DNA of 64,000 nt from Entomortierella parvispora E1425 (Eukaryota; Fungi; Mortierellomycota). The position numbers and the translations under genes are program-made. The notes under the pieces are model-generated. The model did no database searches. It saw only the letters and a list, made by a program, of their open reading frames with translations, and was not told the DNA's origin. Shown here in pieces: positions 22,171 through 61,526 of this stretch; position 1 is the stretch's first letter, and each line of letters starts with the position of its first letter. The stretch spans positions 1,054,001 through 1,118,000 of the forward strand of contig BQFW01000005.1 of NCBI GenBank assembly GCA_020891255.1, given 5' to 3'.

Positions 22171-24965
22171 ATGGACGTGGCCTTGGCTTCTCGTGACTCT
22201 ACTAGTCCAACTGAAGTCAGAAATAACTCCAGTGGCGTCCATGGCGATGATTCTCTGGTCAAGGACGGTCAAGGCGTGATAAGTTTAAGGCTGGAGTTGA
22301 GCAGACCCAAGTAACCACACAATTAGGCAAAGTTGCTCTAAATGAACATTCCTGTGGGGAGCAGTTCCTTAACCAGTTTCCTCTTCTCACGACCTGCTCT
22401 CCAGGTTTTGGAATGATATTGCTATAGGAAATCCAACGGCCCAGAATATTGCCGGACAAATGTATGAGCATGGTCAGGATGTTCCACAATGCTTCGAAAA
22501 AGCAATGGCGTTTTATTGGAAGGCCGCAAATCAAGGACATGCCTCTGCTCAGAACAGCATCGGTATCCTGCACCGTGACGGCAGGGGGGCTCCAAAAAGT
22601 GACTTAATCGCCATAGAATGGTTTTCCAAAGCTGCCGACCAAGGACTCGCCGATGCCCAGTTCAACTTGGGAATGATCTATCGTCGAAACAACGATCGTA
22701 CTGGGGCTATGGAGTGGCTCCAGAAGGCTGCCAACCAAGGACATGGAATCGCTCAGTTCAGTGTTGGCGCAATGTATTATGAAGGATATGGCGTTCCTCA
22801 GGACCTGTCGAAAGCCATGGAGTGGTATATGAAGGCCTCCAGCAAAGGATATGCGATTGCTCAGTTTAGCATTGGCGCAATGTACTATAGTGGTGAGGCC
22901 GTTGACCAGGACCACTCTATTGCGGCTGAATGGTACTTAAAGGCGGCCGTCCAAGGATATGCCGAGGCTCAATTTAACCTCGGCATCTTATACCAACATG
23001 GCAGGGGCGTTTCTCTAGACAATTCCTCAGCGATCATGTGGTACATGAGGGCGGCGGACCAAGGGCTCGTCCAGGCTCAGTATCATGTAGGACTTTTGCA
23101 CCATGTTGGTGGAATTATTTCACAGGACAAATCCAAGGCTGTAGAATGGTATTATAAGGCTGCCAGGCAAGGAGATATTGACGCTCAGTTCAGCCTAGGC
23201 GCAATGTATGATGAAGGCGACGGTATAAATCAGGACTATCAGAATGCATCAGAATGGTATTCGCGAGCGGCAGCCCAGGGGCACGCCACAGCTCAGCACA
23301 ATATTGGGTCTATGTACGAAGCTGGAAAGGGTGTTCCACAGGACTTCCACAAAGCTATGGAGTGGTATCTGAAGGCAGCTGATCAAGGACTGGCCGATTC
23401 CCAGAACAAGATTGGGTCCATGTATGAAACTGGCAAGGGTGTTCCACAGGACTACCAGAAAGCTATGGAGTGGTATCAGAAGGCCGCTGAACAAGGACTG
23501 GCCGATTCCCAGAACAAGATTGGGTCCATGTATGAAACTGGCAAGGGTGTTCCAAAGGACTTCCACAAAGCTATGGAGTGGTATCTGAAGGCAGCTGATC
23601 AAGGACTGGCCGATTCCCAGAACAAGATTGGGTCCATGTATGAAACTGGCAAGGGTGTTCCACAGGACTACCAGAAAGCTATGGAGTGGTATCAAAAGGC
23701 AGCTGATCAAGGACTGGCCGATTCCCAGAACAAGATTGGGTCCATGTATGAAACTGGCAAGGGTGTTCCAAAGGACTTCCACAAAGCTATGGAGTGGTAT
23801 CTGAAGGCAGCTGATCAAGGACTGGCCGATTCCCAGAACAAGATTGGGTCCATGTATGAAACTGGCAAGGGTGTTCCACAGGACTACCAGAAAGCTATGG
23901 AGTGGTATCAAAAGGCAGCTGATCAAGGACTGGCCGATTCCCAGAACAAGATTGGGTCTATGTACGAAGCTGGAAAGGGTGTTCAACAGGACCACCAAAA
24001 AGCTATGGAGTGGTATCAGAAGGCCTCCCAACAAGGGAGCTCCGCTGCCCAGAACAATATTGGGTCCATGTACGAAAATGGCAAGGGTGTTCCACAGGAC
24101 CACCAGAAAGCTCTGGAGTATTATCTGAAGGCCGTCGGACTAGGAGAAGTCGGTGCACAGCGCAAGATAAACAGTATACTCAGTATGGATCAAGGTGACG
24201 AAGGTGTTTCGCATGACTACCAACGAGCCACGGAGCGTTGTCAGAATGTCCCTCTGTCTTACGAAACCGACTGCAGTATCGATTATAATATTCCCCTTGT
24301 CCAAGTCTTTGTGGTTCTTCCTTCAAAGACTCAAAATCGAAGTCGATCTGAACAAGAGAATCAACAGACACAAACATTCAAGATCGAGACGCAGAAGGAC
24401 TTGATTTCAAAGAAAAATGTTATCTACTGGGGCGATCTGATAAAGATGTACGAGAAAGCTCTCCGCCTCCAAAACAAAGACGGTCAACGGATCTCATTCT
24501 TGAAAGACGACAATGGAGTCATGTAAGTCAATTGTCCCCTCCTCCCCCCTCCAAAAAAAAAAGTTCGCTTAATCAATTAACGAAATACTGCTTTGCAGAC
24601 TTGTACCCTTTCGAATAGAATGCAGCGCGGAGCCCATTGAGATTGTCTCAGAAACGCTTGATCTTGATCCAAATTTCAATTTCTTGAGTGATGGACCTAG
24701 GATTGAGCCAGGTAGGAAGCTGTCGGCTGCGACTCGATTTCGCATGAGGTTGAGCCAGACGCCACTTTCACCGTCGTCTGATATTTCGACAAGTACCGAC
24801 AACAAACAATCAAAGCTCCTTCCACTAGTTCAAAGACCGAATTTGCGCTGGAGCGACCCTTCGAGGAATTTCCCAGCTTCAGTAGATAGTGATCATGGCA
24901 AGTTCGTAGAACCAAATGAGGAGGACCTATCTTGTCCAGCAGAAATTTTCCATGGAGATTGCTGA
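22171..24965 (+). CDS. Sel1-like repeat protein (16 repeats) with C-terminal module; start uncertain, 1 intron
   Basis: 36-aa repeats G.A.AQ..LG.MY..G.GV.QD..KA.EWY.KAA.Q; the frame is open from about 22245 but ATG 22171 is in another frame; intron 24523-24598 joins GV|ILVPFRI and the last exon ends at 24965. Confidence 0.85.
23300..24060 (+). repeat. Near-identical 108-bp Sel1 coding repeats with a 216-bp higher-order period
   Basis: Units alternate DFHKAMEWYL / DYQKAMEWYQ and are almost identical at DNA level. Confidence 0.95.
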
Positions 24966-32959: not shown

Positions 32960-35250
32960 GCTGACGCGTGTTGCGGGAAGTGTGTCAGTGTCAGTGGATC
33001 ATACTTTGATGCAATCATATTCACCTCCCATTCCTCCATGGACACTCAACTACCAACGGCATCCTTGGTGCTTTGTTATTCCCTTTGTCCCGTTCCCAGC
33101 TGTGTCACCGTGGGCAAAGAGAAAAGGCAGGGCCAGACGACTTGTGAGCATGGCGAAGCACACGACAATTTTTCTTGCGACTCGATCTGTACCGCTTGCA
33201 ATCTGGTCTTCATCTTCATTCCATCCATTCACCATTTGCCATTTGCCATTTGCCATTTGCCATCTGCCATTAGTCATTGATCACTGGTCATTTGCTGCTT
33301 TTGTTCCCTCGAACTCCAATCTCTTCTTCCTTGCTACCTGGACCTTTGTCTCCTTCCACCGGTAGGGAAACTGGCTTCAAAACATAGAATGGTACTTTTA
33401 TTGCTTCCTGTAGAAACTGACCTTGTTTCCCCTTTGCGCAACAGAGAAGTTGACTATCATTGATCCCCCCCGCACTCTTGCTGCACCACTGTCTTCAGTA
33501 CGCTCACTTCTTGCCCGCGAGGGCTCTGCCGCGTCAGCCGCCTGGTTCCCCACCTTCAGATTCTGATCTTCCAATCGAACTCTTCCTCCAGCCATAGGTG
33601 ATCATCTTTAATTTCGGTCGTCCGCTTCAAACGTGGGAAACTCCGCAATTTCTATTATCCAAGTTTGCGTAAGTAACTCGTTTCTATAGACATGACCACC
33701 ATGAACTTCGTCCTACCACAGGTTCTAACGATAGCCGATTGCTCTTTTTGGTTCTCTTTGTTATTAGCCTGCCTCTCTCTGTCTCAGCTCGCTGCCTTGG
33801 AATAAAAAGGGAGATCGTCGGAACTCCAAGGTGAGGATGGAGTGTCGTTCAGCAAAGATGCGTTGTGACTGGACCTTAACGATTCTTATACTTGCCTCTC
33901 ATCTCTATCAAGATTTAGGAAATGTCAAAGTCACCTCAAAAGTCCCACGCAAAGGATGGCAGCGCATCTGGTGCAAAAGGTAAAAGCAGAATAGCGGCTG
34001 CCATCTTCGGTATGAGCAAGATGTCGTTCTCTGTGGCTGTCTCAAAAGCAGGAAAGGGTTCAAAATCGGCCCCAACAACCGCCCCAATCGTATCAAAGGC
34101 AATTCGCAATTCAACTCCAGTCTCAGTGGCTGCTTCCACGCCTGCGCCAAGTCCCTCACCGGATGCCCCATTCAATTCGAAATCGTCCACCGTTGCAGTC
34201 CCAAACACGATGACTGCAGTGCTGGACATATTTTCCATGGATACCACCAAGATCAAGCTGGTCATCCCTTTGCCAAAGGTTGGAGAAGACATCGAGTCAA
34301 CAACACAACTCGTTGCTTGTGCCGAGCTACTGGCATCGAGTTTAGCCGTTACATCGGATTCAGAGTCGGCCAACAAACTCGTCAACACAGATTCCCCCAC
34401 GCCTTCTCAAATTGAATGGAAACAGGAGATGGACGAACGGCCATTAGAGAAAGAAAACATCCATCAGTTGATGAGCCAGATGGTCGAACGGTTTATTGAC
34501 CTTCCCATCAAATAGTCGGATGCCATTCGCGAAATTGTCCTCCTCGGACCTGTCTTGGACAAGGAGCTTTACCGGGCCTTGCTCAATCAGTTTCTTTACG
34601 AGCTCGCGAACAAGGATATCCTCAGCGTCGATTTGCTTCAGGGGCTGGTCAAGCTGGTCGAACACGCGCCTCCATTCTATCTTCTCGCAGACCTTCCCAT
34701 CAAGATCCTGAGGGCCATCCGACATCATTTCAAGGATTCTTCTCAGCAGGAAACATCCACTATCATCCATTTGACAATCGCCATCTCCAAGGTGCTCGTG
34801 ATCATGGCTGATGGTGGAGCAGAGGATCTGAACCGCGCAGAGGAGCACGAACCGTTGCTCGAGATTCTGTCTAAACTAAAGAAGCACACGGATCCATTGA
34901 TGTGATACCAGGTCGAGTACGATTACAGGGCCCTGCAATTGATTCCCGGCACCCGACATTGCGACATAGGTTCACTCGCAGTGGACTTGACTTGATTGGA
35001 GGGCTGATGACAACCTCAGGTGTTATCTTATCCAGCTGGACTTTGGCGGTGTAGCGGAGGGTCTTCCTGAGGTGATCAAGAATGGGCGAGAGCTCACTGA
35101 AATCCTGAAGAAGCACTTTGGTCCTGATGAGCAGAATACATGGTTCATTGCCGTCCGAAGAGCCGAAGCTATGGTGAACGAGGGCCGACTTGTCGATTTC
35201 AACCGATTCATCTGCGAAACCGACTGTTGTCAGGATCCGTTTTTCCAGTG
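32960..35250 (+). repeat. ~2.3-kb segmental duplication, copy 1 (copy 2 at about 42674-44950)
   Basis: Near-identical sequence over the upstream region and 5' part of the NLR; identity ends abruptly after CAGGATCCGTTTTTCCAGTG (35250/44950). Confidence 0.95.
33922..35250 (+). pseudogene. Truncated NACHT-WD40 NLR pseudogene (Arm-like region only)
   Basis: Shared TAG at 34513-34515, extra TGA at 34903-34905, a 1-nt loss near 34950 and a 5-nt TTATC duplication near 35025 relative to copy 2. Confidence 0.9.
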
Positions 35251-40725: not shown

Positions 40726-42441
40726 TCAATGAAAGAATCGGCCCCTGCACATCCATCCCTCATTCCCGGTCATGACAGTTCCAAGAATATGTCGGTGATC
40801 CATCCAATACCTCTCGAACAGTTCACAAAGACCAGCTTTGGCCTTCACATCCGGATGCAGAGACCATAGACGGATTTTGGTAAGCATGGGCCAATGGTCC
40901 AGCATCCATTGTGCTTCTTCAAGGTCCACATCTTCTCCTGTTTCGCAGTACAAATTCAGCTCCGTCAGTCGTCGCAAAGCTTTCAGTCGGTCCAGCCCAC
41001 AGTCCAATCGAATTTTCAAGTACTCGACTCTTTCGTACTCAGTCATGTCCACATTTTCGAATAACAAGGCACGGAGGTGTGTCAAAGTTGCCAATCGATC
41101 AAGAAAAATGGTAGACGAAACTGGTGTGGCCTGTGACATTGATGGCGGTTGTGGCTGTAGATCTAAGGACAATGAGCTGGGATCTCGGGTTGATAGATCC
41201 ATGTTACCTGCTGTCAAGATTTCTGCTGTTGTTTCTCCTGCCGTCTCTCCACTGACCGGCGTTAAATTTTTCCGGACAGATGCAAGCACAAACGCGAGAG
41301 AATGTTCCTCGATGTTTTTGCAAATCCATGGTCTTGGGTCGAGTTCAATATCCCAAGCCGAGATCATAGGTGCGCGCAGGATTCGTAGTTGAGGCATCTC
41401 GCATAGGAACCGTTGCACCATCGATCCGTCTACCTCTGGGCACAGGCACATGGAAAGCGACAACGTCTCCAGTTTCATCCTTTGCTTCCCAGCACCAGAC
41501 TCCAACAGCGCTACAGATGAAAGCTCCCCAAACTCCATTTCAGACAAAGTGAAGTGATTCAGAGGGGCTACCGCCTCCAATAATTGCGCCAGTTCGGAAT
41601 CTTTCAACTCAATGCACAAGTCCAGACTCTCCAGAAACGACCAATAACCGGCTCTGAGACCTTTAAGCCACATGGAGAAGTATTCCGCAGGTAAGTCATT
41701 AGCCGACACCCATTCAAGCGAGCGAATCTCTTGGTAGTCTTCCAGAAGTTGGTATACCTCTTCTCCCGGCCGACAGTATTGCAAAGCCAAATGGTGGATG
41801 TTGCAGTCAGTCAACCTTTGTGGTAGGTTTAGTTCGCGCTCCGATGGAGTGGACTGATAGCCGCATGTTGAGAAGTCCACACGGCTCCGCTTGAGGCTCC
41901 TCAGTTGCATCAAGACCCTCCTTGAATCGTTATCCATCTCCTCCATTATCATATCTCCATCGGTGATGTCCAGATTCGTGAGCCGACTCTTTGGTTGCTT
42001 AAAGCCCTGCAGGATATCCCAGACTGAGAAGTGAATCCTTGACCTTCTTGATTCTTGCTGAAACAAAACTCGCAGTGACACGAGATGACGGTTGTTCGCT
42101 TGAATAAAGCCTTTCAAAATTACTCTGGGATCATCATCGCCGCGACAGGCTTCCTGGACATCGAGAACAAGGCGTCGTAGACGAGGGAAGCGGAGTAGTC
42201 CATCGAGGTAGTTGAAAGCCGTTAGGTGCGGCATAATGGTGAATTTGAGGGACTTGATCATCTTAGCATGGCCCCAGAGTTTGTCGAAAGTGTCGTCGTC
42301 GAAGTTGAACGTGTCGTAGTCTTCGCCTTGTAGCTCAATGTCTTGCCAAAGTCTTGGGCGGAAGCATCGATACCAAGAACTAGAGACCTGGATACATGCC
42401 AAGAAACTTGTTTTGGACAGGTAGCTTGCAATCATTGACAT
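40726..42441 (-). CDS. F-box/RNI-like protein
   Basis: 571-codon ORF starting MSMIASYLSKTSFLACIQVSSSW; C-terminal PRPWIC...LDRLKALRRLTEL...EAQWMLDHWP; an upstream ATG at 42475 is out of frame by 1 nt. Confidence 0.85.
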   Translation of the reverse strand: MSMIASYLSKTSFLACIQVSSSWYRCFRPRLWQDIELQGEDYDTFNFDDDTFDKLWGHAKMIKSLKFTIMPHLTAFNYLDGLLRFPRLRRLVLDVQEACRGDDDPRVILKGFIQANNRHLVSLRVLFQQESRRSRIHFSVWDILQGFKQPKSRLTNLDITDGDMIMEEMDNDSRRVLMQLRSLKRSRVDFSTCGYQSTPSERELNLPQRLTDCNIHHLALQYCRPGEEVYQLLEDYQEIRSLEWVSANDLPAEYFSMWLKGLRAGYWSFLESLDLCIELKDSELAQLLEAVAPLNHFTLSEMEFGELSSVALLESGAGKQRMKLETLSLSMCLCPEVDGSMVQRFLCEMPQLRILRAPMISAWDIELDPRPWICKNIEEHSLAFVLASVRKNLTPVSGETAGETTAEILTAGNMDLSTRDPSSLSLDLQPQPPSMSQATPVSSTIFLDRLATLTHLRALLFENVDMTEYERVEYLKIRLDCGLDRLKALRRLTELNLYCETGEDVDLEEAQWMLDHWPMLTKIRLWSLHPDVKAKAGLCELFERYWMDHRHILGTVMTGNEGWMCRGRFFH

Positions 42442-42673: not shown

Positions 42674-44950
42674 GCTGACGCGTGTTGTAAGGAATTGTCA
42701 GTGGATCATACTTTGATGCAATCGTATTCACCTATTCACCCCCCATTCCTCCCTGGACACTCAACGACCAACGGTATCCTCGGTGATTTGTTATTCCCTT
42801 TGTCCCGTTCCCAGCTGTGTCACCATGGGCAAAGAGAAAAGGCAGGGCCAGATGACTTGTGAGCATGGCGAAGCACACGAAAATTTTTCTTGCAAGGCTC
42901 GATCTCGACCGCTTGCAATCTGGTCTTCATCTTCATTCCATCCATTCACCATTTGCCATTTGCCATTGGTCATTGGTCATTGGTCATTGGTCATTCTCTG
43001 CTTTTGTTCCCTCGAACTCCAATCTCTTCTTCCTTGCTACCTGGACCTTTGTCTCCTTCCACCGGTAGGGAAACTGGCCTCAAAACATAGAATGGTACTT
43101 TTATTGCTTCCTGTCGAAACTGACCTTGTTTCCCCTTTGCGCAACAGAGAATTTGACTATCATTGATCCCCCCCCGCACTCTTGCTGCACCACTGTCTTC
43201 GGTACGCTCACTTCTTGCCCGCGAGGGCTCTGCCGCGTCAGCCGCCTGGTTCCCCACCTTCAGATTCTGATCTTCCAATCGAACTCTTCCTCCAGCCATA
43301 GGTGATCGTGTTTAATTTCGGTCGTCCGCTTCAAACGTGGGAAACGCTGCAATTTCTATTATCCAAGTTTGCGTAAGTAACTCGTTTCTATAGACATGAC
43401 CACCATGAACTTCGTCCTACCACAGGTTCTAACGATAGCCGATTGCTCTTTTTGGTTCTCTTTGTTATTAGCCTGCCTCTCTCTGTCTCAGCTCGCTGCC
43501 TTGGAATAAAAAGGGAGATCGTCGGAACTCCAAGGTGAGGATGGAGTGTCGTTCAGCAAAGATGCGTTGTGACTGGACCTTAACGATTCTTATACTTGCC
43601 TCTCATCTCTATCAAGATTTAGGAAATGTCAAAGTCACCTCAAAAGTCCCACGCAAAGGATGGCAGCGCATCTGGTGCAAAAGGTAAAAGCAGAATAGCG
43701 GCTGCCATCTTCGGTATGAGCAAGATGTCGTTCTCTGTGGCTGTCTCAAAAGCAGGAAAGGGTTCAAAATCGGCCCCAACAGCCGCCCCAGCCGCATCAA
43801 AGGCAATTCGCAATTCAGCTCCAGTCTCAGTGGCTGCTTCCACGCCTGCGCCAAGTCCCTCACCGGATGCCCCATTCAATTCGAAATCGTCCACCGTTGC
43901 AGTCCCAAACACGATGACTGCAGTGCTGGACATATTTTCCATGGATACCACCAAGATCAAGCTGGTCATCCCTTTGCCAAAGGTTGGAGAAGACATCGAG
44001 TCAACAACACAACTCGTTGCTTGTGCCGAGCTACTGGCATCGAGTTTAGCCGTTACATCGGATTCAGAGTCGGCCAACAAACTCGTCAACACAGATTCCC
44101 CCACGCCTTCTCAAATTGAATGGAAACAGGAGATGGACGAACGGCCATTAGAGAAAGAAAACATCCATCAGTTGATGAGCCAGATGGTCGAACGGTTTAT
44201 TGACCTTCCCATCAAATAGTCGGATGCCATTCGCGAAATTGTCCTCCTCGGACCTGTCTTGGACAAGGAGCTTTACCGGGCCTTGCTCAATCAGTTTCTT
44301 TACGAGCTCGCTAGCAAGGATATCCTCAGCGTCGATTTGCTTCAGGGGCTGGTCAAGTTGGTCGAACACGCGCCTCCATTCTATCTTCTCGCAGACCTTC
44401 CCATCAAGATCCTGAGGGCTATTCGACGTCATTTCAAGGATTCTTCTCAGCAGGAAACATCCACTATCATCCATTTGACAATCGCCATCTCCAAGGTGCT
44501 CGTGATCATGGTTGATGGTGGAGCAAAGGATCTGAACCGCGCAGAGGAGCACGAACCGTTGCTCGAGATTCTGTCTAAACTAAAGAAGCACACGGATCCA
44601 TTGGTGCGATACCAGGTCGAGTACGCTTACAGGGCCCTGCAGTTGATTCCCGACGATGAAACATTGGGACATAGGCTCACTCGCAGTGGACTTGGCTTGA
44701 TTGGAGGATTGATGACAACCTCGGGTGTTATCCAGCTGGACTTTGGCGGTGTAGCGGAGGGTCTTCCTGAGGTGATCAAGAATGGGCGAGAGCTCATTGA
44801 AATCCTGAAGAAGCACTTTGGTCCTGATGAGCAGAATACATGGTTCATTGCCGTCCGAAGAGCCGAAGCTATGGTGAACGAGGGCCGACTTGTCGATTTC
44901 AACCGATTCATCTGCGAAACCGACTGTTGTCAGGATCCGTTTTTCCAGTG
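42674..44950 (+). repeat. ~2.3-kb segmental duplication, copy 2
   Basis: See copy 1; offset about 9.7 kb. Confidence 0.95.
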
Positions 44951-47900
44951 GCGTATCTGCCTGATCCTGGGCACAATGGCCGTTGATCCAGCTTGGGACA
45001 CAATCACCCGTCGGAGGGCTATTATTCTCCTTGGCAAGATGTTTGATAGCAACTCCGGATCGACAAAGCATCGAGATGTCCGAAGATGGATCTTGGCGCT
45101 CCTCCACGACATCTCGAAATCCCCCAAGACTGAGCCCTCTCTTGGCGCTGACGACGATGTGATCAGGCAGCAAGCGCTCAACCTGGTACTTGAGCTCGAG
45201 GGCCTTGGAGACGACAGAGCATTCGCACTTCATCACCCAGAGATAATCCATTGCCGTTCAAAGACATCCTCCGACTTGCTGAGAGATGACTGCAACACCC
45301 TGGAACTAGACCTTGTCCTTGATCGTCTCCGATATCAAAGACGAGAAATATTCAGTAAGCATGCTGTCTACATCTACCCGATGTCAAAGCCAAACCTTCA
45401 GGCGTCAGATGAGAGTCATAACCCGTTGCATGATTGTGTGCACCAGTTCCTGGAAGGCAAAGGTCTGGTCATGCTCATCCTGGGTGACTCTGGTGCAGGA
45501 AAGTCAACCTTCAACGCTAGACTGGAGCAGGATCTTTGGAAGACGTACAAAGTGGGCGATCCAATTCCACTTTTCATCGACTTGAAGGCTGTCCGAAATC
45601 TGGACCAGAATCTGATACAGCAGCACCTCGACAGCCTTAATATGTTCTCTGAATATCACATTAAGAAACTGAGATCTCGAGAGTTCATTTTGATCTGCGA
45701 TGGGTACGACGAGAGCCAGAGCCGGTCCAACCTCTACACCGTCAATCAATTCAACAAGCCGAATCAATGGAAAGCCAAGATGGTCGTTTCCTGTCGGACT
45801 CAATATCTCGCGCCAGGGTACCGTGCCTATTTCGCACCTCAACTGGATACGGTCACCAACCTTGACTTGTCTCCGACCAAAGTTGATCTCTTCGTGGAAG
45901 CCGTCATCCTTCCCTTCAAGCTGAGTCAGATCAAAGAGTACATCACACAGTACACTGCCTACTCTGACACAAGCAACAGCAAACTGAGATGGACAACCGA
46001 GCAGTACATGGAGCGATTGAAGAAAATTGATCACATCATGGACTTGATCAAGAATCCATTCATGTTGAGGATGGTCTTGGAGATTCTTCCAACGATGGCG
46101 CCAACAACCACCCAAATCACACGTGTTCAGCTCTACGACAGGTTTGTCGATTTACATTACGAGAACGAGCTGGATCGATTGATAAAGCAGCAGGGGAAAA
46201 TGCTTCCGGATCGTCTTGCGACATTCAAAGAAATGGAAGAGCTCGATTTTGTTGAACTTGGCATTGAGTTCTCGAAGCGGCTCGCAGATGCAATTTTCAA
46301 GGAGGGAAACGGAGTCAACTCTGTAGAGTACGGTATCGCTGACAGCAAATCATGGAAGCGTGATTTTTTCGGTCCCGACCCCAACTCTCAGCTGTTGAGA
46401 GAGTCAAGTCAAATCATCTGCCGTACTAGGACTTCGGACACCCAGGAGAAAACCAGAGGCAGAAATAACTCAGCCGGGAACAAGAGTACGTTTGGATTCA
46501 GTCATTTGTCGATCCTGGAATATTTCTACGCCCTATCAATCTACGACCCCAGGGAAGGCACGCCAGAGCTGGTTTCTTCAGATTCTCCGTCTCCTCTTGC
46601 CGCTGCTTCATCATCTCTGGTCGATCACCCTTTGGGTCGGCGGAGCCTCATCTCCGAGCCAGCGGTTCTCCAATTCTTAGCGGATCGTGTCCGACATATG
46701 GCCAAGTTCAAGGCTCACCTCCATGCTGTTGTTCAACTGTCCAAGACCGATACATCGGCTAATTGTGCAGCAGCTAACGCGATTACGATTCTGATCCGAG
46801 GCGGGGAGCAATTCAATGGAGCAGATCTGAAGGGTATCCGAATTCCTGGTGCGGATCTAAGTTATAGCGACTTTGATTCAGCGCAAATGCAAGGTGCAGA
46901 TCTGAGAAACACCATTCTTCGAAACGCGTGGTTGCATAGGGCCGATCTGAGCAATTCTCTGATGGAGGGGGTTACGTTTGGCGAATTTCCATATCTGAAG
47001 GAGAAAGGTCCCGTGCAGTGCTGTGCATTCTCTCCCAATGGTGCATACTTGGCAGTTGGTCTCGATAATGGCGAGATTGTCGTGTACGATACATCAACAT
47101 GGACCAAGGCGCTCTTCCCGCGGCACATTGCGGAAGCAACAGGGGCTACACACTTAGACAAAGCCGAATATACAACGTCAGGAAATGTTGACAGGACCGT
47201 GCACCTTTTGGACAAACATACCGGTGTTCATGTCACCTCACTGAGTGGCCATACCAGCCGCGTCGATTCTGTGGCATTTTCACCTAGCGGTCACCAAATC
47301 GCATCAGGCAGTTGTGACAAGACTGTGCGACTGTGGGATGCACAGACTGGGGCTCTCGTCACTTCTTTGAGTGCCCATACCGACAGAGTCAGATCAGTGG
47401 CATTTTCACCTAGCGGCCACCAAATCGCGTCAGGCAGTGATGATGGGACAGTGCGATTGTGGGACGCGCGGACTGGGGCTCTTGTTACTTGCTTGGGTGG
47501 CCATACCCATGTGGTCAGTTCTATGTCATTTTCACCTAGCGGTCACCAGATCGCATCAGGAAGCCATGGCAACACTGTTCGACTGTGGGAAGCACAGACT
47601 GGTGCTCTTATCACTTGCTTGAGTGGCCATACCAGCTGGGTCAGATCGGTGGCGTTTTCACCTAGCGGCCACCAGGTCGCATCTGGCAGCATTGACAATA
47701 CTGTGCGACTGTGGAATGCACAAACCGGCGCCCTTGTTACTTCCTTGAGCGGCCATACCGATTACGTCAATTATGTAGCATTTTCACCTAGCGGTCACCA
47801 GATCGCATCAGGCAGTAGGGACAACACTGTACGACTTTGGGATGCACAGATTGGAGCTCCTGTCGCATCCTTGAGTGGTCACACCTCCAGCGTCAATTTT

Positions 47901-49013
47901 GTGGCGTTTTCACCTAGAAGTCACCAGATCGCATCAGGCAGTTATGATGGGACTGTGCGACTGTGGGATGCACAGACAGGTGCTCTTGTCACTTCTTTGA
48001 GTGGCCATACCAGTCACGTCTATTCTGTGGCATTTTCACCCAATACTCGCCGGATCGCATCAGGCGGCAGGGATGAGACTGTGCGACTTTGGGATGCACA
48101 GACTGGTGCTCTTGTCACTTCCTTGAGTGGCCATACCCATGAGGTTAAATCTGTGACGTTTTCGCCTAGCGGACACCAGATCGTGACGGGCAGTGCGGAC
48201 AAGACTGTGCGGCTGTGGGATGCACAGTCTGGTGCTCTTATCACTTCTTTGAGAGGTCATACCAACCTGGTCCTTTCTGTGGCGTTTTCACCTAGCGGCC
48301 ACCAGATCGCATCAGGCAGCAGTGACAATACTGTGCGGCTGTGGGATGCACAGTCTGGTGCTCTCGTCACTTCTTTGAGAGGTCATACCAACCTGGTCTT
48401 TTCTGTGGCGTTTTCACCTAGCGGCCACCAGATCGCATCAGGCAGCAGTGACAATACTGTGCGGCTGTGGGATGCACAGTCTGGTGCTCTCGTTACTTCT
48501 TTGAGAGGTCATACCAACCTGGTCTTTTCTGTGGCGTTTTCACCTAGCGGCCACCAGATCGTATCAGGCAGTTATGACAAGACTGTACGACTGTGCGATA
48601 CTCAGACTGGTGGTCTTGTCACTTCTATGAGTGGCCATACCAACTCGGTATACTCTGTGGTATTTTCACCTAGCGGTCGCCAGATCGCATCAGGCAGTAA
48701 TGATGGGACTGTGCGACTGTGGGATGCACGGACTGGTCATTGCCAATTTATACTGGATGTTTATCAAGGTTCTGTCCTAGCTCTTGCATGGAAGGCTAAT
48801 CTTGACGATTTATATCTCGCGGTTGGAAGTGGTGATAAATCTGTGCGAATGTGGCATGTTATTGAGGATGACACCGACGTCAAGATGCGCTTGAAATGGC
48901 GATCAGCTCCGTACACACTCGAATTATCGCAGGTTTTTATCCAAGACGTCCAGAGCTTAAGTGAGATGAATAGACGGTTGTTGAAGCAACGAGGGGCGAA
49001 AGATCAGCTTTGA
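43626..49013 (+). CDS. Fungal NLR-like protein: Arm-like repeat, NACHT, pentapeptide repeats, WD40; interrupted by an in-frame TAG at 44217-44219
   Basis: Walker A GDSGAGKST, Walker B LICDGYDE, A(D/N)Lxx pentapeptides and about 15 WD40 units; ORFs 43626-44219 and 44259-49013 share one frame. Confidence 0.9.
47244..48755 (+). repeat. Twelve highly similar 126-bp WD40 coding repeats
   Basis: SGHTxxVxSVAFSPSGHQIASGSxDxTVRLWDAQTGALVTSL occurs 12 times. Confidence 0.95.
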
Positions 49014-49050
49014 AGCCCTGGTGAATAAAATAATGGATCAAGGGTATACC

Positions 49051-49094
49051 ATCCTGGTCTGATCTACAGACACCAAAGACAAAAAACTGGAGAC

Positions 49095-49131
<37 letters not shown>

Positions 49132-52100
49132 TCAAAACTCAGGAACAAAGAGAATGACCAGCATCAAAGACCCAAATCTTCAGATCATACATTCTCATTC
49201 ATCAGGTATCATACATAGCAAAGGCAGCTTCAAGTTGTTTTTTAGAAGGGAGAGTTCTTTGTCTCCAAAGAGTTTTTCTTTAATTTGTTTGAATAAAGTG
49301 GCTAAAGTAATAAAACAAAAAGAAGTAGCTTTGAAAGAAAAGTGAGAAGGAAAGAAGGGAGGGAAGGAAGGGAGGGAAGGAGGAGGTTCGGTAACGTTTT
49401 TAAAGTGCTAGTTGGAAGGTGTCTTTAAAGTGCTTTGGAGAGAGAGAGAGGCGGCGAGTGTTGATGACTCCGTGGCGGTATCTTTGCGTGGCCATGGCGT
49501 ACAAGTGCACCCATGTTCTCGGACATCCGAAGGTATCCGCACACGTAACCTTGGCAATCAATCAACGGAGAAGGAAGGTACTTTGGGGAAGGGGAGGGAG
49601 GGGATGCGAGTGGAAGGGGAGGGCTGGAAGGGAAGGGAGGGAAAGGGAAAGGAAAAGAAGGGAAGAAAGAGAGAAGAAAAAAAGAGAGAAAAGGTGGAAA
49701 AGGGAAAGGAATCTGGGGCCAAGGGTCTGTTGGAGCGAGCAAGAAGGAGGGACGGTTGGTTAGAACCTTTTGACATCATGCAGAGCAAAGGACAAGACAT
49801 TCAGACTTGCCTCTTGGCCATTTGGATTCGGGACCGAGAGGGACCGCGACGAGGGAGGTTGCCTTGGTTGTCGTGCCTATTGTTTTGGAAGGCAGACGAT
49901 CTCTGCTGCCGAGGTCAAGCCAAGGAAGGCAGACAACTTTTGGGGCCGAGGCTTGAGCAGAGAAGGCAGGCGGTCTTGAGGACCAAAGTCGAGCCAGGGA
50001 GGGCAAGCGACTTTCGTGGCCAAGGCTTGAGACGGGCGGTCTTGTAGCCGAGGCTCGAGAGGCAGAGGAGCGCTTGCTTGCGGCTGATGGAGGGCCAAGG
50101 AAGGCGGGCTCGAGGGACCAAGATCAAGGGAGTAGCCAGGCAGCGGAGGGGCTTCTTGAAGGCATGGTGGTTGCCGGCCCAGTGTGAAGAGGCAGCATGA
50201 TGATTTGTTTCTGTGTGGAAGGAGAGAGAAGTGAAGAAGAAGGATAAGGATCAAAAGTGGGGGGATCGGGGCGATATTTATATGAAATGCGGATGTTAAT
50301 TGCTGCGGTCCCCTCGGGAGATGCGAGAGGGAGACAGACAGAGAGACGGGCCTCGACCTCATGACAGAAGGAAGGAAAATGGTCATGAGGATGGGGGAGA
50401 TACGATAAAGACGATGATGAAGGAGGGAAGATAGCGACAGAGGATGTTGATTGGTCCATTGTCGCATGAATGGAGGCCCAAGAACCGACGGACCATGGGC
50501 AATAATCCGTCACCGGGGAGATAGACACCTTTTATCCGATACCGGGAGATAGCGACATGGAGCGTGTAATTTCCATGTAATTTATTCCAATATCTGAGAG
50601 AAGGCCAAAATGGCCTTCCTTGGCTGTTCTTCGGCCCTTGCTCGTGTTGGAAAGAGGCAATAATCCCTCACCGGGGGATAGACACATTTTATCCGTTACC
50701 GAGTGGTAGCGTGCTACTTTTCCCTATCGCCGTCTCTCGGTAACGGATAAAATGTGTCTATCTCCCCGGTGACCCATGGCCCCTCGGCCCTTTGACCTCC
50801 TTTCCTTCCACCATTCATGCGACAATGGACCAATCAACGTCCTTTGTCACTATCTTTCCTCCTTCATCATCGCTCTATCGCATTTTCCACCCATCCTGAG
50901 GCCGAGGCCCGTCTCTCTATTTCTCTCCCTCTCGCATCTCCCGAAGGGACCGTAGCAATTAACAGCCGCACTTCATATAAATATCGCCCCGATCCCCCCA
51001 CTTTTGATCCTTATCCTTCTTCTTCACTTGTCTCTCCTTCCACATACAAAAACAAATCATCATGCTGCCTCTTCACACTTGGCCAGCAACTACCATGCCT
51101 TCAAGAAGCCCTTCCGCTGCCTGGCTACTCCCTTGATCTTGGTCCCTCGAGCCCGCCTTCCTTGGCCCTCCATCTGCCGCAAGCAAGCGCTCCTCTGCCT
51201 CTCGAGCCTCGGCTACATGACCACTCGCTTCAAGCCTTGGCCACAAAGTCGCCTGCCCTCCCTGGCTCGACTTTGGTCCTCAAGACCGCCTGCCTTCTCT
51301 GCTCAAGCGTCGACCCAAAAGTTGTCTGCCTTCCTTGGCTTGACCTTGGCCGCAGAGATCGTCTGCCTTCCAAAACAATAGGCACGACAACCAAGGCAAC
51401 CTCCCTCGTCGCGGTCCCTCTCGGTCCCGAATCCAAATGGCCAAGAGGCAAGTCTGAATGTCTTGTCCTTTGCTCTGCATGATGTCAAAAGGTTCTAACC
51501 AACCGTCCCTCCTTCTTGCTCGCTCCAACAGACCCTTGGCCCCAGATTCCTTTCCCTTTTCCACCTTTTCTCTCTTTTTTTCTTCTCTCTTTCTTCCCTT
51601 CTTTTCCTTTCCCTTTCCCTCCCTTCCCTTCCAGCCCTCCCCTTCCACTCGCATCCCCTCCCTCCCCTTCCCCAAAGTACCTTCCTTCTCCGTTGATTGA
51701 TTGCCAAGGTTACGTGTGCGGATGCCCTCGGGTATCCGAGAACATGGGTGCACTTGTACGCCATGTCCACGCAAAGATACCGCCACGGGGTCTCAACGCT
51801 CGCCGACTCTCTCCTTCCTAAGCACAACATCCACCTCTCCTCTGTTCTTGATTGCCAAGGTTACGTGTGCGGACGCCCTCGGGTGTCCGAGAACATGGGT
51901 GCACTTGTACGCCATGGCCACGCAAAGATACCGCCACGGAGTCATCAACACTCGCCGCCTCTCTCTCTCTCCAAAGCACTTTAAAGACACCTTCCAACTA
52001 GCACTTTAAAAACGTTTCCGAACCTCCTCCTTCCCTCCTTCCCCTCTCCCCTTCCTCCCCTCTTTCTATTTCAAAGCTACTATTTTTTTTGATATTTTAG

Positions 52101-52340
52101 CCACTTTATTCAAACAAATTAAAGAAAAACTCTTTGGAGACAAAGAACTCTCCCTTCTAAAAAACAACTTGAAGCTGCTGCCTTTGCTATGGATGATACC
52201 TGATGAATGAGAATGAATGATAAGTCAATATGGGTCTTCGATGAAATTCATTCTCTTTTTTTTTTTTCTTTTTTTTTCTGTCTTCTGTTTTTTTTGGTCC
52301 TCCGTTTTTTGTCTTTGCTGTCTGTAGATCAGATCAGGAT
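49051..52340. repeat. ~3.3-kb imperfect palindrome (foldback)
   Basis: 49051-50557 is the reverse complement of about 50725-52340 with substitutions and indels; the right arm carries an extra ~150-bp internal duplication. Confidence 0.93.
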
Positions 52341-53669
52341 GAATAAACAGCATTTTGTCAACACACTCGAGCCAGGGCATTGTTGTGAAGAGGTTGAAGG
52401 GGTATGCTGACATGAACGAGTCCTGGCCGCCCCACTTAACTCATCATAGCTTCGTATCTTTGTATCAGTACCAAGAATGGTGGGATGGATCATTTGTAAT
52501 CGTGTTACACCCCTCGTAGCCTAGTTAATGGTGCGCTCTTATTGGTTTATTTCCTCGTTTTTCTTTCTACCTTTCGACGGAGCATTCTCTTCTAAGATCA
52601 AAAAGGCCATTGATGTCGATCATCTTGAGTTACGGGATCTACAGGTTAGCAAGATCGATTGTCAGAGCCAGATGAAGGCCATCGATTCAACTGTGAGCTA
52701 CGGAGACGATCTAACAGTATACCCCCCCTAGTTCTGACTCAAATGAGCCCAACGGCTATGGTCCAGAGCGCAACTGTTGACAGGAAGACATCTCTTCCTG
52801 TCTTTGTTTCGGCCACATTGAGTTATCCTTAAAAATGCAGTCATCTTTCGTAGGAAAGATAGGCTGACGTGTCTAAGAGCCCTCTCTGTCTCCGGCTCGA
52901 GAGCAGATCTTTTGTCTGCGATGGAGAAGCATCTTCAGGAGGCAAATCTATTTCCCAGGGATATTGCAATTGATAGTCCGGCCATCGTCAATGGTCTCAC
53001 TGGCAAAGTCCAGCGGCTCCCTATAACAGCCTCCGCCTTGCGCGAGCCTCTCAGCCATGGTCAGAGACAAGATCGAGCGCGCCAGCAGCTACGCCATCTA
53101 AAAGAGTTGATACAATCTAGTGCTGTCGCACAGAGACGATCTTGTGGGTCATCAGGTACAATGCCTTTGCCTCAATTCAGCAACGGCCCGCGGACGCCAA
53201 ATATGTTCTTATGTGGACCTTCAGCAATGATGTATGCACTTGTGCAGAGAAGCGATTGGGGGGCATTCCTTCGTGGAGAACCAAAGCAGAGCATGCACAA
53301 GGCGCTGGAGCCATTGTCTTGTTGACGCGAATGCAGCATGTACAAGACGCTGGAGCCATTGTCTTGCTGATGCGAATGCAGCATGTCAGGTCGTGCAGGA
53401 ACGAAGGTGATCAATGCAGATGATGATCTCAAGCGGCAACTCCATTATTGACTAAAATGAACGAGTTGGAACAGAGACATGACAAGGGGAGGATGAGAAG
53501 GATGAAGGATGAGCGAAGAAGGATGAGTGGGAACGATGAGCAGTGGGAGAGATGCGGCTCAGAATGGTCACAGTTGGCCAATCGTCCGTTGTGCGTCCGT
53601 GCGTGGAGAGAGCGAAGGACGCGCGCGTTGGCGTTGGTGGGGATTTTGTGTCTGTCTGCGTCTGGCTCC

Positions 53670-60695: not shown

Positions 60696-61526
60696 ATGAA
60701 ACTCCAAAACTCGCTTATCCTATGTGTCCTTTTGGGATTCGCAGCTGCTACTCCTATTAACAGGTATATCGGCGGTGGAGACAACGATGGCGTCGGTGTC
60801 GGCGTTGGTGGTAAAAGCAATCACGGTGGAGGAGTCCATGTCGGCGGTGAAGACAACTATGGCTCCGGTGTCGGCGTAGGCGGCAAAAGCAATCACGGTG
60901 GAGGAGTCCATGTCGGCGGTGAAGACAACCATGGCGTCGGTGTCCACGTCGGTGGTAAAGGTAATCACGGTGGAGGAATCAGTGTTGGTGGTGAAGACAA
61001 CTATGGCTCCGGTGTCGGCGTAGGCGGCAAAAGCAATCACGGTGGAGGAGTCCATATCGGCGGTGAAGACAACCATGGCGTCGGTGTCGGCGTAGGCGGC
61101 AAAAGCAATCACGGTGGAGGAGTCCATGTCGGCGGTGAAGACAACTATGGCTCCGGTGTCGGCGTAGGCGGCAAAAGCAATCACGGTGGAGGAGTCCATG
61201 TCGGCGGTGAAGACAACCATGGCGTCGGTGTCCACGTCGGTGGTAAAGGTAATCACGGTGGAGGAATCAGTGTTGGTGGTGAAGACAACTATGGCTCCGG
61301 TGTCGGCGTAGGCGGCAAAAGCAATCACGGTGGAGGAGTCCATATCGGCGGTGAAGACAACCATGGCGTCGGTGTCGGCGTAGGCGGCAAAAGCAATCAC
61401 GGTGGAGGAGTCCATGTAGGCGGTGAAGACAACTCTGGAGGTGTTGTCTCCATTGGTGGTGAAGGCAACTCTGGACGTCTAATCTCTCTTGGTGGTGAAG
61501 GTAACCTTGGTGGGCTCTATCTTTGA
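60696..61526 (+). CDS. Secreted glycine-rich repeat protein (276 aa)
   Basis: Signal peptide MKLQNSLILCVLLGFAAA; the rest is almost entirely 12-aa GGxxNxGxGVxV units. Confidence 0.88.
   Translation: MKLQNSLILCVLLGFAAATPINRYIGGGDNDGVGVGVGGKSNHGGGVHVGGEDNYGSGVGVGGKSNHGGGVHVGGEDNHGVGVHVGGKGNHGGGISVGGEDNYGSGVGVGGKSNHGGGVHIGGEDNHGVGVGVGGKSNHGGGVHVGGEDNYGSGVGVGGKSNHGGGVHVGGEDNHGVGVHVGGKGNHGGGISVGGEDNYGSGVGVGGKSNHGGGVHIGGEDNHGVGVGVGGKSNHGGGVHVGGEDNSGGVVSIGGEGNSGRLISLGGEGNLGGLYL

Follow-up and report, generated by a model that had tools for sequence, protein, structure and literature searches.

We describe an immune-receptor-like NLR gene in a window of 64,000 nucleotides of DNA from the soil fungus Entomortierella parvispora E1425 (contig BQFW01000005.1, positions 1,054,001 to 1,118,000); all positions below count from the first letter of this window. 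The gene, called copy 2 because its 5' end has a duplicate upstream (copy 1), starts with an ATG at 43626 and runs for 197 codons to an in-frame TAG at 44217-44219, which is followed by 1597 stop-free codons and a terminal stop at 49011-49013. The residues around the first stop are ...DLPIK-TAG-SDAIREIVLLGP.... The gene is laid out as follows.

43626 to 44216, plus strand: N-terminal open frame of 197 codons; codons 1-100 are Ser/Ala/Pro low-complexity, after which come a motif conserved in the family and the first part of ARM_5
44115 to 45119, plus strand: ARM_5 domain (PF23948), with the TAG about 33 residues past the domain start, which is placed by comparison with the paralog
44217 to 44219, plus strand: in-frame TAG, codon 198; AAG (Lys) in the nearest paralog, hence a single A>T transversion
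44220 to 49013, plus strand: 1597 open codons and the terminal stop, with the remaining ARM_5, NACHT, pentapeptide repeats and WD40 array
44508 to 44510, plus strand: first in-frame ATG past the TAG, codon 295
45468 to 45770, plus strand: NACHT NTPase (PF05729) with the Walker A motif GDSGAGKST (Pfam, 27.2 bits against a cut-off of 26.7)
46809 to 46925, plus strand: pentapeptide repeats (PF00805; Pfam, E 4.6e-8)
47001 to 48872, plus strand: WD40 array (Pfam, about 13-14 repeats; 13 stretches at E 1.4e-152)

The 1597 codons counted here agree with an earlier note on this DNA, made from its letters alone, which had described copy 2 as free of lesions for about 1600 codons; the first in-frame ATG after the stop, which the note placed at 44508, is confirmed. 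An out-of-frame ATG at 44224 precedes it and opens a 63-codon frame. ARM_5 spans residues 165-505 in the intact paralog, and the part of copy 2 after the TAG matches positions 46-369 of the profile, while a Pfam search with the 197-codon N-terminal piece alone gave no match. The WD40 array holds 12 tandem 126-bp units (47216-48737) that are about 80% identical overall, and some adjacent units reach 98-100% identity as protein. Thus, copy 2 has a NACHT domain with its P-loop and C-terminal superstructure-forming repeats, as expected of a fungal NLR, but it lacks the single uninterrupted frame of its paralogs.

The gene resembles the fungal NACHT-WD40 NLRs (STAND receptors, for example, Podospora HET-E/HNWD), a group with birth-and-death turnover and repeat homogenisation: in both, the NACHT NTPase precedes a long series of WD40 repeats that are very similar to one another. 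The resemblance extends to the family as a whole, which has expanded strongly within its lineage (here to at least 45 loci), contains many broken paralogs and shows sequence exchange between paralogs. However, the N-terminal domain here is ARM_5 behind a low-complexity leader rather than HET, HeLo or Goodbye, a pentapeptide-repeat segment lies between NACHT and WD40, and the host belongs to the Mortierellomycota and is not a dikaryon.

Members of this ARM_5-NACHT-pentapeptide-WD40 family in E. parvispora are intron-free at the position of the TAG, and more than 25 of them keep one open frame through it. The nearest paralog (P0001, on contig C1) is 89% identical, 1796 aa long and intact, and it has AAG where copy 2 has TAG; the stop is therefore a disabling lesion relative to an intact close relative. 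A stop at this site was found in none of the paralogs. The residue at the position is K in the nearest paralog and T, P, S, D, E or F in others, and it is never W, as the earlier note suspected when it wrote that Trp was not obviously the family residue.

Searches for the locus elsewhere returned relatives only. No protein 100% identical to it was present among the 120 matches listed, which did include paralogs from the same assembly, and a word-indexed protein search for orthologs found only same-assembly paralogs and distant Mortierellaceae proteins. An exact-protein look-up of the 197-aa product and a search of the JGI metagenomes with a 40-nt pattern around the stop (N at the first stop base) gave no match. 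The analysis therefore marks a locus that, among the matches listed, is absent from public protein annotation.

The 5' end of the gene belongs to a segmental duplication, within which the two copies share long identical runs.

32989 to 35250, plus strand: copy 1, a truncated dead duplicate (self-BLAST) with a TAG at 34513-34515 and further lesions
42696 to 44950, plus strand: copy 2 of the 2.26-kb segmental duplication (self-BLAST), comprising 930 bp of upstream region and the first 441 NLR codons
43349 to 43781, no strand: identical run 1, 433 bp with 0 differences from copy 1 (33645-34077), covering 277 bp 5' of the ATG and codons 1-52
43782 to 43818, no strand: 37-bp patch that separates the identical runs, with 5 differences, all G/C in copy 2 and A/T in copy 1
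43819 to 44311, no strand: identical run 2, 493 bp with 0 differences from copy 1 (34115-34607), containing the TAG

Copy 1 is a duplicate of the 5' end of the gene and lies 9.7 kb upstream of copy 2; the two segments are 96.3% identical over 2274 columns. A whole-genome DNA search found these two close copies only, plus the C1 paralog at 75-85%. The frame of copy 1 starts at an ATG at 33922 and has the identical PIK-TAG-SDAIREIVLLGP, and so the in-frame stop is present in both copies, as first noticed. The further decay reported for copy 1 within about 750 bp of its TAG was also found in full: a second stop, TGA, at 34903-34905 (CGA>TGA), a 1-bp deletion after 34950, a 5-bp insertion at 35023-35027 and loss of homology at 35250, which is 737 bp past its own TAG. 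The point where the homology ends adjoins short dispersed repeats.

The two identical runs stand out against the divergence around them. The left flank (42696-43348) has 31 differences in 653 bp (4.7%) and the right flank (44312-44950) has 26 differences in 639 bp (4.1%). In permutations, the mean longest run was 169 bp and the probability of a longest run of at least 494 was 1e-5; a run of the second-longest length occurred in 0 of 200,000 permutations (P <5e-6). The identity spans non-coding DNA and every synonymous site of codons 1-52 and 66-228, and therefore selection cannot explain it. Identity far above the divergence expectation, with diverged flanks on both sides, is the pattern of a conversion tract, and we infer that the tracts arose through recent gene conversion between the copies. 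The 37-bp patch is read as an unconverted island or as the junction between two conversion events. There are few data on the direction of conversion: polarised amino-acid changes in the tract number 7 versus 6, with 30 unpolarised, and there are 0 frameshifts.

Because the TAG lies inside the 493-bp run, a stop shared by the copies need not predate their duplication. This observation changes how the intact downstream frame is to be read. If the stop dated from the duplication and the frame had been neutral ever since, the 4791 bp would be expected to have collected 3.6 stops and 11 indels, and the probability of an intact frame would be only 3e-7 to 1e-5. The probability rises to 0.13-0.44 if the stop is no older than the identical tracts permit (95% bound). 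The earlier argument that an intact frame is improbable behind an old stop thus holds for a stop that predates the duplication, but its premise, that a shared stop is an old stop, fails here, since the TAG sits in a run with zero differences. The tracts cap the age of the stop except where copy 2 was the donor, in which case their identity sets no cap; the bound then comes from the intact frame itself, at no more than about 20% of the time since duplication under neutrality, and is partly circular.

Substitutions in copy 2 also bear on its recent history. Changes derived in copy 2 outside the tract comprise 4 synonymous and 1 non-synonymous, as compared with 7 synonymous, 12 non-synonymous (one of them a stop) and 2 indels derived in copy 1. 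In a relative-rate test, the copy 2 branch has 15 amino-acid changes and the paralog branch 17, with no acceleration, and omega between copy 2 and the nearest paralog is 0.13 (ARM-NACHT). Judged from these comparisons, copy 2 has evidently been under purifying selection through most of the period after the duplication; no relaxed constraint was seen in it in either the ratio of changes or the relative rates. This lack of relaxation fits a very young stop and equally a gene that is still under selection. A very recent lesion would leave no trace of relaxation, and so the observation does not contradict a young pseudogene, yet it lends no positive support to one.

Taken together, it is likely that copy 2 is a young NLR pseudogene and that the shared stop was spread by gene conversion. 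One A>T change turned the Lys codon 198 (AAG) into TAG within ARM_5, and a recent conversion would have homogenised about 960 bp (43349-44311, minus the 37-bp island) that include the 5' untranslated or promoter-proximal region, the N-terminus and the stop. The transfer could have gone either way: the stop may have arisen in the dead copy 1 and been transferred to the live gene, or have passed in the opposite direction. The copies would share the TAG because this recent conversion homogenised them, and an intact 4.8-kb downstream frame is then to be expected; the stop would have resided in copy 2 only briefly, leaving no time for a second lesion to arise. Presumably copy 2 now makes no functional full-length protein. 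Recent gene conversion had been offered as an alternative in the earlier note, and the runs of 433 and 493 bp between flanks diverged by 4.1-4.7% now back it.

Human CYP21A2/CYP21A1P and SBDS/SBDSP are familiar pairs of a gene and a neighbouring duplicate pseudogene between which conversion has carried disabling mutations. As in those pairs, a gene is found here near a decayed duplicate, and a short identical tract in diverged flanks carries a nonsense mutation. Unlike them, the tract here is broken by the 37-bp island, and the direction of transfer could be either. The value of the locus lies in a resolved puzzle, for a stop common to two duplicates looks old and would make the intact 4.8-kb frame a hint of stop bypass. 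It also offers, in an early-diverging fungus, a clean small case of an NLR gene and its truncated duplicate exchanging sequence by conversion, and contributes to the view that the NLR repertoire of E. parvispora turns over rapidly by birth and death.

Several other explanations deserve consideration. One is that the TAG is truly present in the dead copy 1 only and was copied into an intact copy 2 by short-read polishing. The assembly was made from Nanopore reads (SMARTdenovo) and polished by Nanopolish and Pilon with 2x150-bp reads (PMC8759367); the Nanopore reads carry the accession DRA010776, and an RNA-seq data set from vegetative mycelium exists as DRA013164. Ambiguous mapping of short reads in the 493-bp identical tract could erase a lone true difference, and such an artefact would also account for the unrelaxed constraint in copy 2. 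However, the right end of the identical run (44312) lies no more than 95 bp beyond the TAG, so that many of the 150-bp reads over the TAG, and most of the read pairs, extend into differences specific to one copy and can be placed uniquely. Furthermore, Nanopore reads cover the entire 2.3-kb repeat, and the AAAAAG of the paralog was correctly called in the same assembly. An artefact thus seems improbable.

We also think it unlikely that the TAG predates the duplication and that the downstream frame has stayed under selection through readthrough or through A-to-I editing of UAG to UGG. The purifying selection on copy 2 and its unaccelerated rate would be explained in this way, an inserted residue might be tolerated at a site so variable in the family, and two other paralogs have an in-frame TAG in otherwise open frames. 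But the identical tracts supply an ordinary cause of the shared stop, and the stops in other paralogs differ in site and source codon, one of them being a TGA. As to readthrough, known motifs include UAG-CARYYA and UGA-CUAG, and the context AAA-UAG-UCG-GAU matches neither of these; no RNA structure was found locally or downstream of the TAG (folding z-scores +0.67 and +1.09). As to editing, a long frame that is intact but for one in-frame UAG does recall the stop-loss A-to-I editing of premature UAG codons in the sexual stage of Sordariomycetes, but the ancestral codon here is AAG instead of TGG, there is no hairpin context and the phylum is a different one. We know of no report of stop-loss editing in Mortierellomycota. 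Since the mismatch-free tract points to recent homogenisation as the reason for the sharing, no unusual translation mechanism is needed; the suggestion that readthrough, editing or re-initiation upheld selection on the frame found no positive support.

A broader version, which we consider less probable still, is that E. parvispora keeps some NLR genes with an in-frame UAG, which readthrough or editing would overcome inefficiently or only under certain conditions. If this were true, the UAG would act as a safety catch on a receptor that might damage the fungus itself, and the paralogs on C10 and C9, which have in-frame TAGs but otherwise open frames of 1800 codons, would be further cases. The unrelaxed constraint in copy 2 is compatible with this reading, although no finding speaks positively for it. 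The frames and stops of 15 apparently broken paralog loci were mapped. In the C10 paralog, a single TAG replaces the Gln of the family; the C9 paralog has two stops, a TAG at a position that is Trp in its subclade and a TGA at a position that is Ser in the family. A systematic bypass in the family was rejected, as the broken paralogs have no site, codon or ancestral residue in common.

It is very improbable that the gene works as a two-piece NLR, in which a 197-residue N-terminal peptide cooperates with a second product whose translation restarts at Met295 (44508). In its favour, both frames are open and the 197-codon frame is kept in both copies, although in copy 1 nearly all of this frame falls inside the converted tract and its integrity is therefore uninformative. 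The break falls within ARM_5, and a start at Met295 would drop about 130 ARM_5 residues. Codons 199-294 have remained constrained after the duplication (3 synonymous and 0 clearly non-synonymous copy-2-derived changes), and the finding that every change specific to copy 2 from the TAG to Met295 is synonymous argues against a long-standing product initiated there. In addition, the out-of-frame ATG at 44224 comes ahead of 44508, and eukaryotic ribosomes re-initiate very inefficiently once they have translated a frame of 197 codons.

Finally, a small in-frame intron ending at the AG of AAATAG can be dismissed, for although the TAG end resembles YAG (AATAG), 94 in-frame GT...AG pairs span the TAG and one NLR subfamily does carry an intron about 330-360 codons downstream of the TAG position, 0 of the 94 candidates have a GTRNGT-type donor, all paralogs code continuously there and excision would delete conserved ARM_5 residues.

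Lightly broken paralogs are frequent in the E. parvispora genome, and their sites and ancestral codons all differ. For example, the paralog at C8:2791300 has one true frameshift, and several further paralogs are heavily degraded. Other frames may be only apparently broken. The clustered in-frame stops at C12:455000 resemble an in-frame intron, and the single TGA at C1:742000 may be one as well, less surely than at C12:455000. At C13:2053500, C13:1630000 and C8:3091500, the frame shifts at one common position, which is consistent with the same intron lying out of frame.

The NLR gene (copy 2) begins with 197 codons from the ATG at 43626, which are ended by a TAG at 44217-44219. Past the TAG, the frame stays open for 1597 more codons to a terminal stop at 49011-49013, and so the earlier note was correct in calling copy 2 lesion-free across about 1600 codons. 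The domains and repeats downstream of the TAG are:

Directly 3' of the TAG: ARM_5 (PF23948; Pfam)
45468-45770: NACHT (PF05729; Pfam)
46809-46925: pentapeptide repeats (Pfam)
47001-48872: about 13-14 WD40 repeats, 12 tandem 126-bp units among them (Pfam and repeat analysis)

Head-to-head with the NLR gene, on the minus strand at 40726-42441, is an ORF of 571 aa that encodes an F-box-like domain (PF12937, E 2e-5). A large inverted repeat (49050-52341; arms of about 1.1 kb at 91% and about 0.5 kb at 88%) starts right after the NLR stop codon. Self-BLAST also detected two tandem-repeat arrays, 23294-24134 and 60766-61438, whose units repeat about every 108 bp and 72 bp and are 86-98% identical.

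The duplication pairs 32989-35250 with 42696-44950 at 96.3% identity (self-BLAST). The upstream, dead duplicate (copy 1) is a second copy of the gene's 5' part, starting at 33922, and has the same in-frame PIK-TAG-SDAIREIVLLGP as copy 2, as had been observed before in every element. The decay described for copy 1 (a second stop, two indels and a truncation) was also found: beyond the TAG are a TGA at 34903, a 1-bp deletion and a 5-bp insertion, and the homology stops at 35250, at the onset of short dispersed repeats. The other edge, 42696, is within the intergenic region common to the F-box ORF and the NLR gene; therefore, the F-box gene itself is left out of the duplication.

Pairwise alignment of the two copies gives 62 difference events in 2274 columns, and they are spread very unevenly. 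Thirty-one are in 42696-43348 (4.7%) and 26 in 44312-44950 (4.1%); the 963 bp between these flanks have only five, all inside a 37-bp patch at 43782-43818. This leaves zero-difference runs of 433 bp (43349-43781) and 493 bp (43819-44311), the latter containing the TAG. When 62 events are placed at random, the longest run averages 169 bp, a longest run of at least 494 bp has P = 1e-5 and none of the 200,000 trials gave a second run of at least 434 bp. Because the identity takes in 277 bp 5' of the ATG as well as all synonymous sites, selection cannot account for it. The straightforward reading of the alignment would be recent gene conversion, in one patchy event or two, and the two runs between divergent flanks support what the earlier note had offered as its alternative. 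The 37-bp patch may have escaped conversion or may mark a local cluster of mutations; each of its five differences pairs a G or C in copy 2 with an A or T in copy 1, and differences are three times as dense there (13.5%) as in the flanks.

Had the stop been present since the duplication (about 2.2% per lineage) and the 4791 bp downstream been neutral from then on, some 105 substitutions, along with 3.6 new stops and 11 indels, would be expected, and the probability of an intact 4791-bp frame would be 3e-7 to 1e-5. For such an old stop, the previous argument that the intact frame implies selection would hold. However, the TAG is in a probable conversion tract, and a stop common to both copies is no evidence of antiquity, whichever copy was the donor. 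Zero differences in 926 bp (or 493 bp) cap the age of the conversion at 0.16-0.30% per lineage (95% bound); if the TAG entered copy 2 with the conversion, the probability of an intact frame is 0.13-0.44 and the paradox is gone. With the dead copy as donor, the stop in copy 2 would be no older than the tract. With copy 2 as donor, the stop would have arisen there somewhat earlier than the conversion, its age limited only by the intact frame to at most about one fifth of the post-duplication time under neutrality.

Changes outside the tract were polarised with the C1 paralog as outgroup. Four synonymous and one non-synonymous change are derived in copy 2, and seven synonymous changes, 12 non-synonymous changes (the TGA included) and two indels are derived in copy 1. 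Over ARM-NACHT, copy 2 and that paralog (P0001) have a dS of 0.41 and an omega of 0.13, and a relative-rate test with four outgroup paralogs places 15 changes on the copy-2 branch and 17 on the paralog branch. Together these results imply that copy 2 was under selection for most or all of the post-duplication time. Such constraint fits a very young stop and would be equally compatible with ongoing selection. The stretch from the TAG to Met295 has three changes derived in copy 2, all of them synonymous, and this speaks against translation from Met295 having long yielded a product.

A six-frame search of the genome (the 38.9-Mb, 20-contig E. parvispora E1425 assembly, in which the window is C5:1054001-1118000; PMC8759367) gave 31 matches to the 197-residue piece, more than 20 of which are single open frames of 1763-1917 codons, uninterrupted through the homologous TAG position; at least 45 loci match the ARM-NACHT part. 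Since the paralog frames run open across the site, the family has no intron there. An intron removing the TAG was also rejected in copy 2 itself, as none of the 94 in-frame GT...AG pairs that span it has a consensus-like donor. The nearest paralog, P0001 (1796 aa, 89% identity over ARM-NACHT), reads DLPIK-K-SDAIREIVLLGP at the site with the codon AAG, from which the TAG, judged by this alignment, is a single A>T transversion. In other paralogs the residue is T, P, S, D, E or F, never W, in line with the earlier remark that Trp is not obviously the family residue. ARM_5 covers residues 165-505 of the intact paralog, and so the stop sits about 33 residues into this domain. We infer that the TAG arose by ordinary nonsense mutation within a domain and marks neither an intron nor a domain boundary.

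P0001 is an ARM_5-NACHT-pentapeptide-WD40 NLR. The public record of its locus (C1:1450500-1458900, minus strand) is named 'protein transport protein SEC13', which looks like a mis-annotation driven by the WD40 repeats. Its homology to the NLR in the window reaches about 930 bp 5' of the ATG, at 75-85%.

Quite probably, copy 2 is a young nonsense NLR allele that shares its stop with the truncated duplicate through recent gene conversion: the gene would have gained the allele lately, and the conversion would have made the stop common to both copies. An assembly artefact is very unlikely. The assembly is from Nanopore reads polished with Nanopolish and Pilon (PMC8759367), and polishing could conceivably have overwritten a lone true difference within an identical tract with TAG; however, variants specific to each copy lie as close as 95 bp to the TAG, and long reads cover the entire repeat. 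The matches listed from a protein search with the locus comprised only paralogs of the same assembly and distant proteins from Mortierellaceae, none 100% identical; an exact protein look-up and a metagenome pattern scan gave no match.

That the stop is tolerated or bypassed, as the earlier note proposed through readthrough, editing or re-initiation, is very improbable. We know of no readthrough motif that matches the context AAA-UAG-UCG-GAU, the RNA at the stop and 3' of it folds no better than shuffled sequence does (z +0.67 and +1.09), UAG-to-UGG editing would give a residue foreign to the family at this site, and the first ATG past the stop, at 44224, is in another frame, with the next in-frame ATG 291 nt downstream of the stop.

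Fifteen other broken-looking paralog loci were inspected. Two with in-frame stops resemble an in-frame intron, within which six-frame searches would report stops:

L016, C12:455000-463500, nt 2338-2391: three clustered stops
L017, C1:742000-750800, minus strand: single TGA, less surely an intron

Three apparent frameshifts at the same position, two on C13 and one on C8 (L015, L025, L026), are consistent with that intron being out of frame. One NLR subfamily seems to carry a short intron some 330-360 codons 3' of the TAG-homologous position, and these five loci, rather than being pseudogenes, are probably intact. Several further loci are heavily degraded, and three have discrete lesions:

L012, C10:416800-424200, nt 1412-1414: TAG at a family Gln, otherwise open for about 1800 codons
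L014, C9:554500-561500, minus strand: TAG at a subclade Trp and TGA at a family Ser, otherwise open for about 1800 codons
L013, C8:2791300-2798400, minus strand: one true frameshift about 30 codons past the homologous position

A family-wide stop pattern was rejected, as the sites, stop types and ancestral codons differ among the C10, C9 and C8 loci and copy 2. Such scattered lesions are what one expects of birth-and-death turnover in a large NLR family, and the case of copy 2 is ordinary in kind. The protein EMPS_06544 (1559 aa) is the downstream frame of L013 begun at an internal Met, and is an N-terminally truncated gene model.
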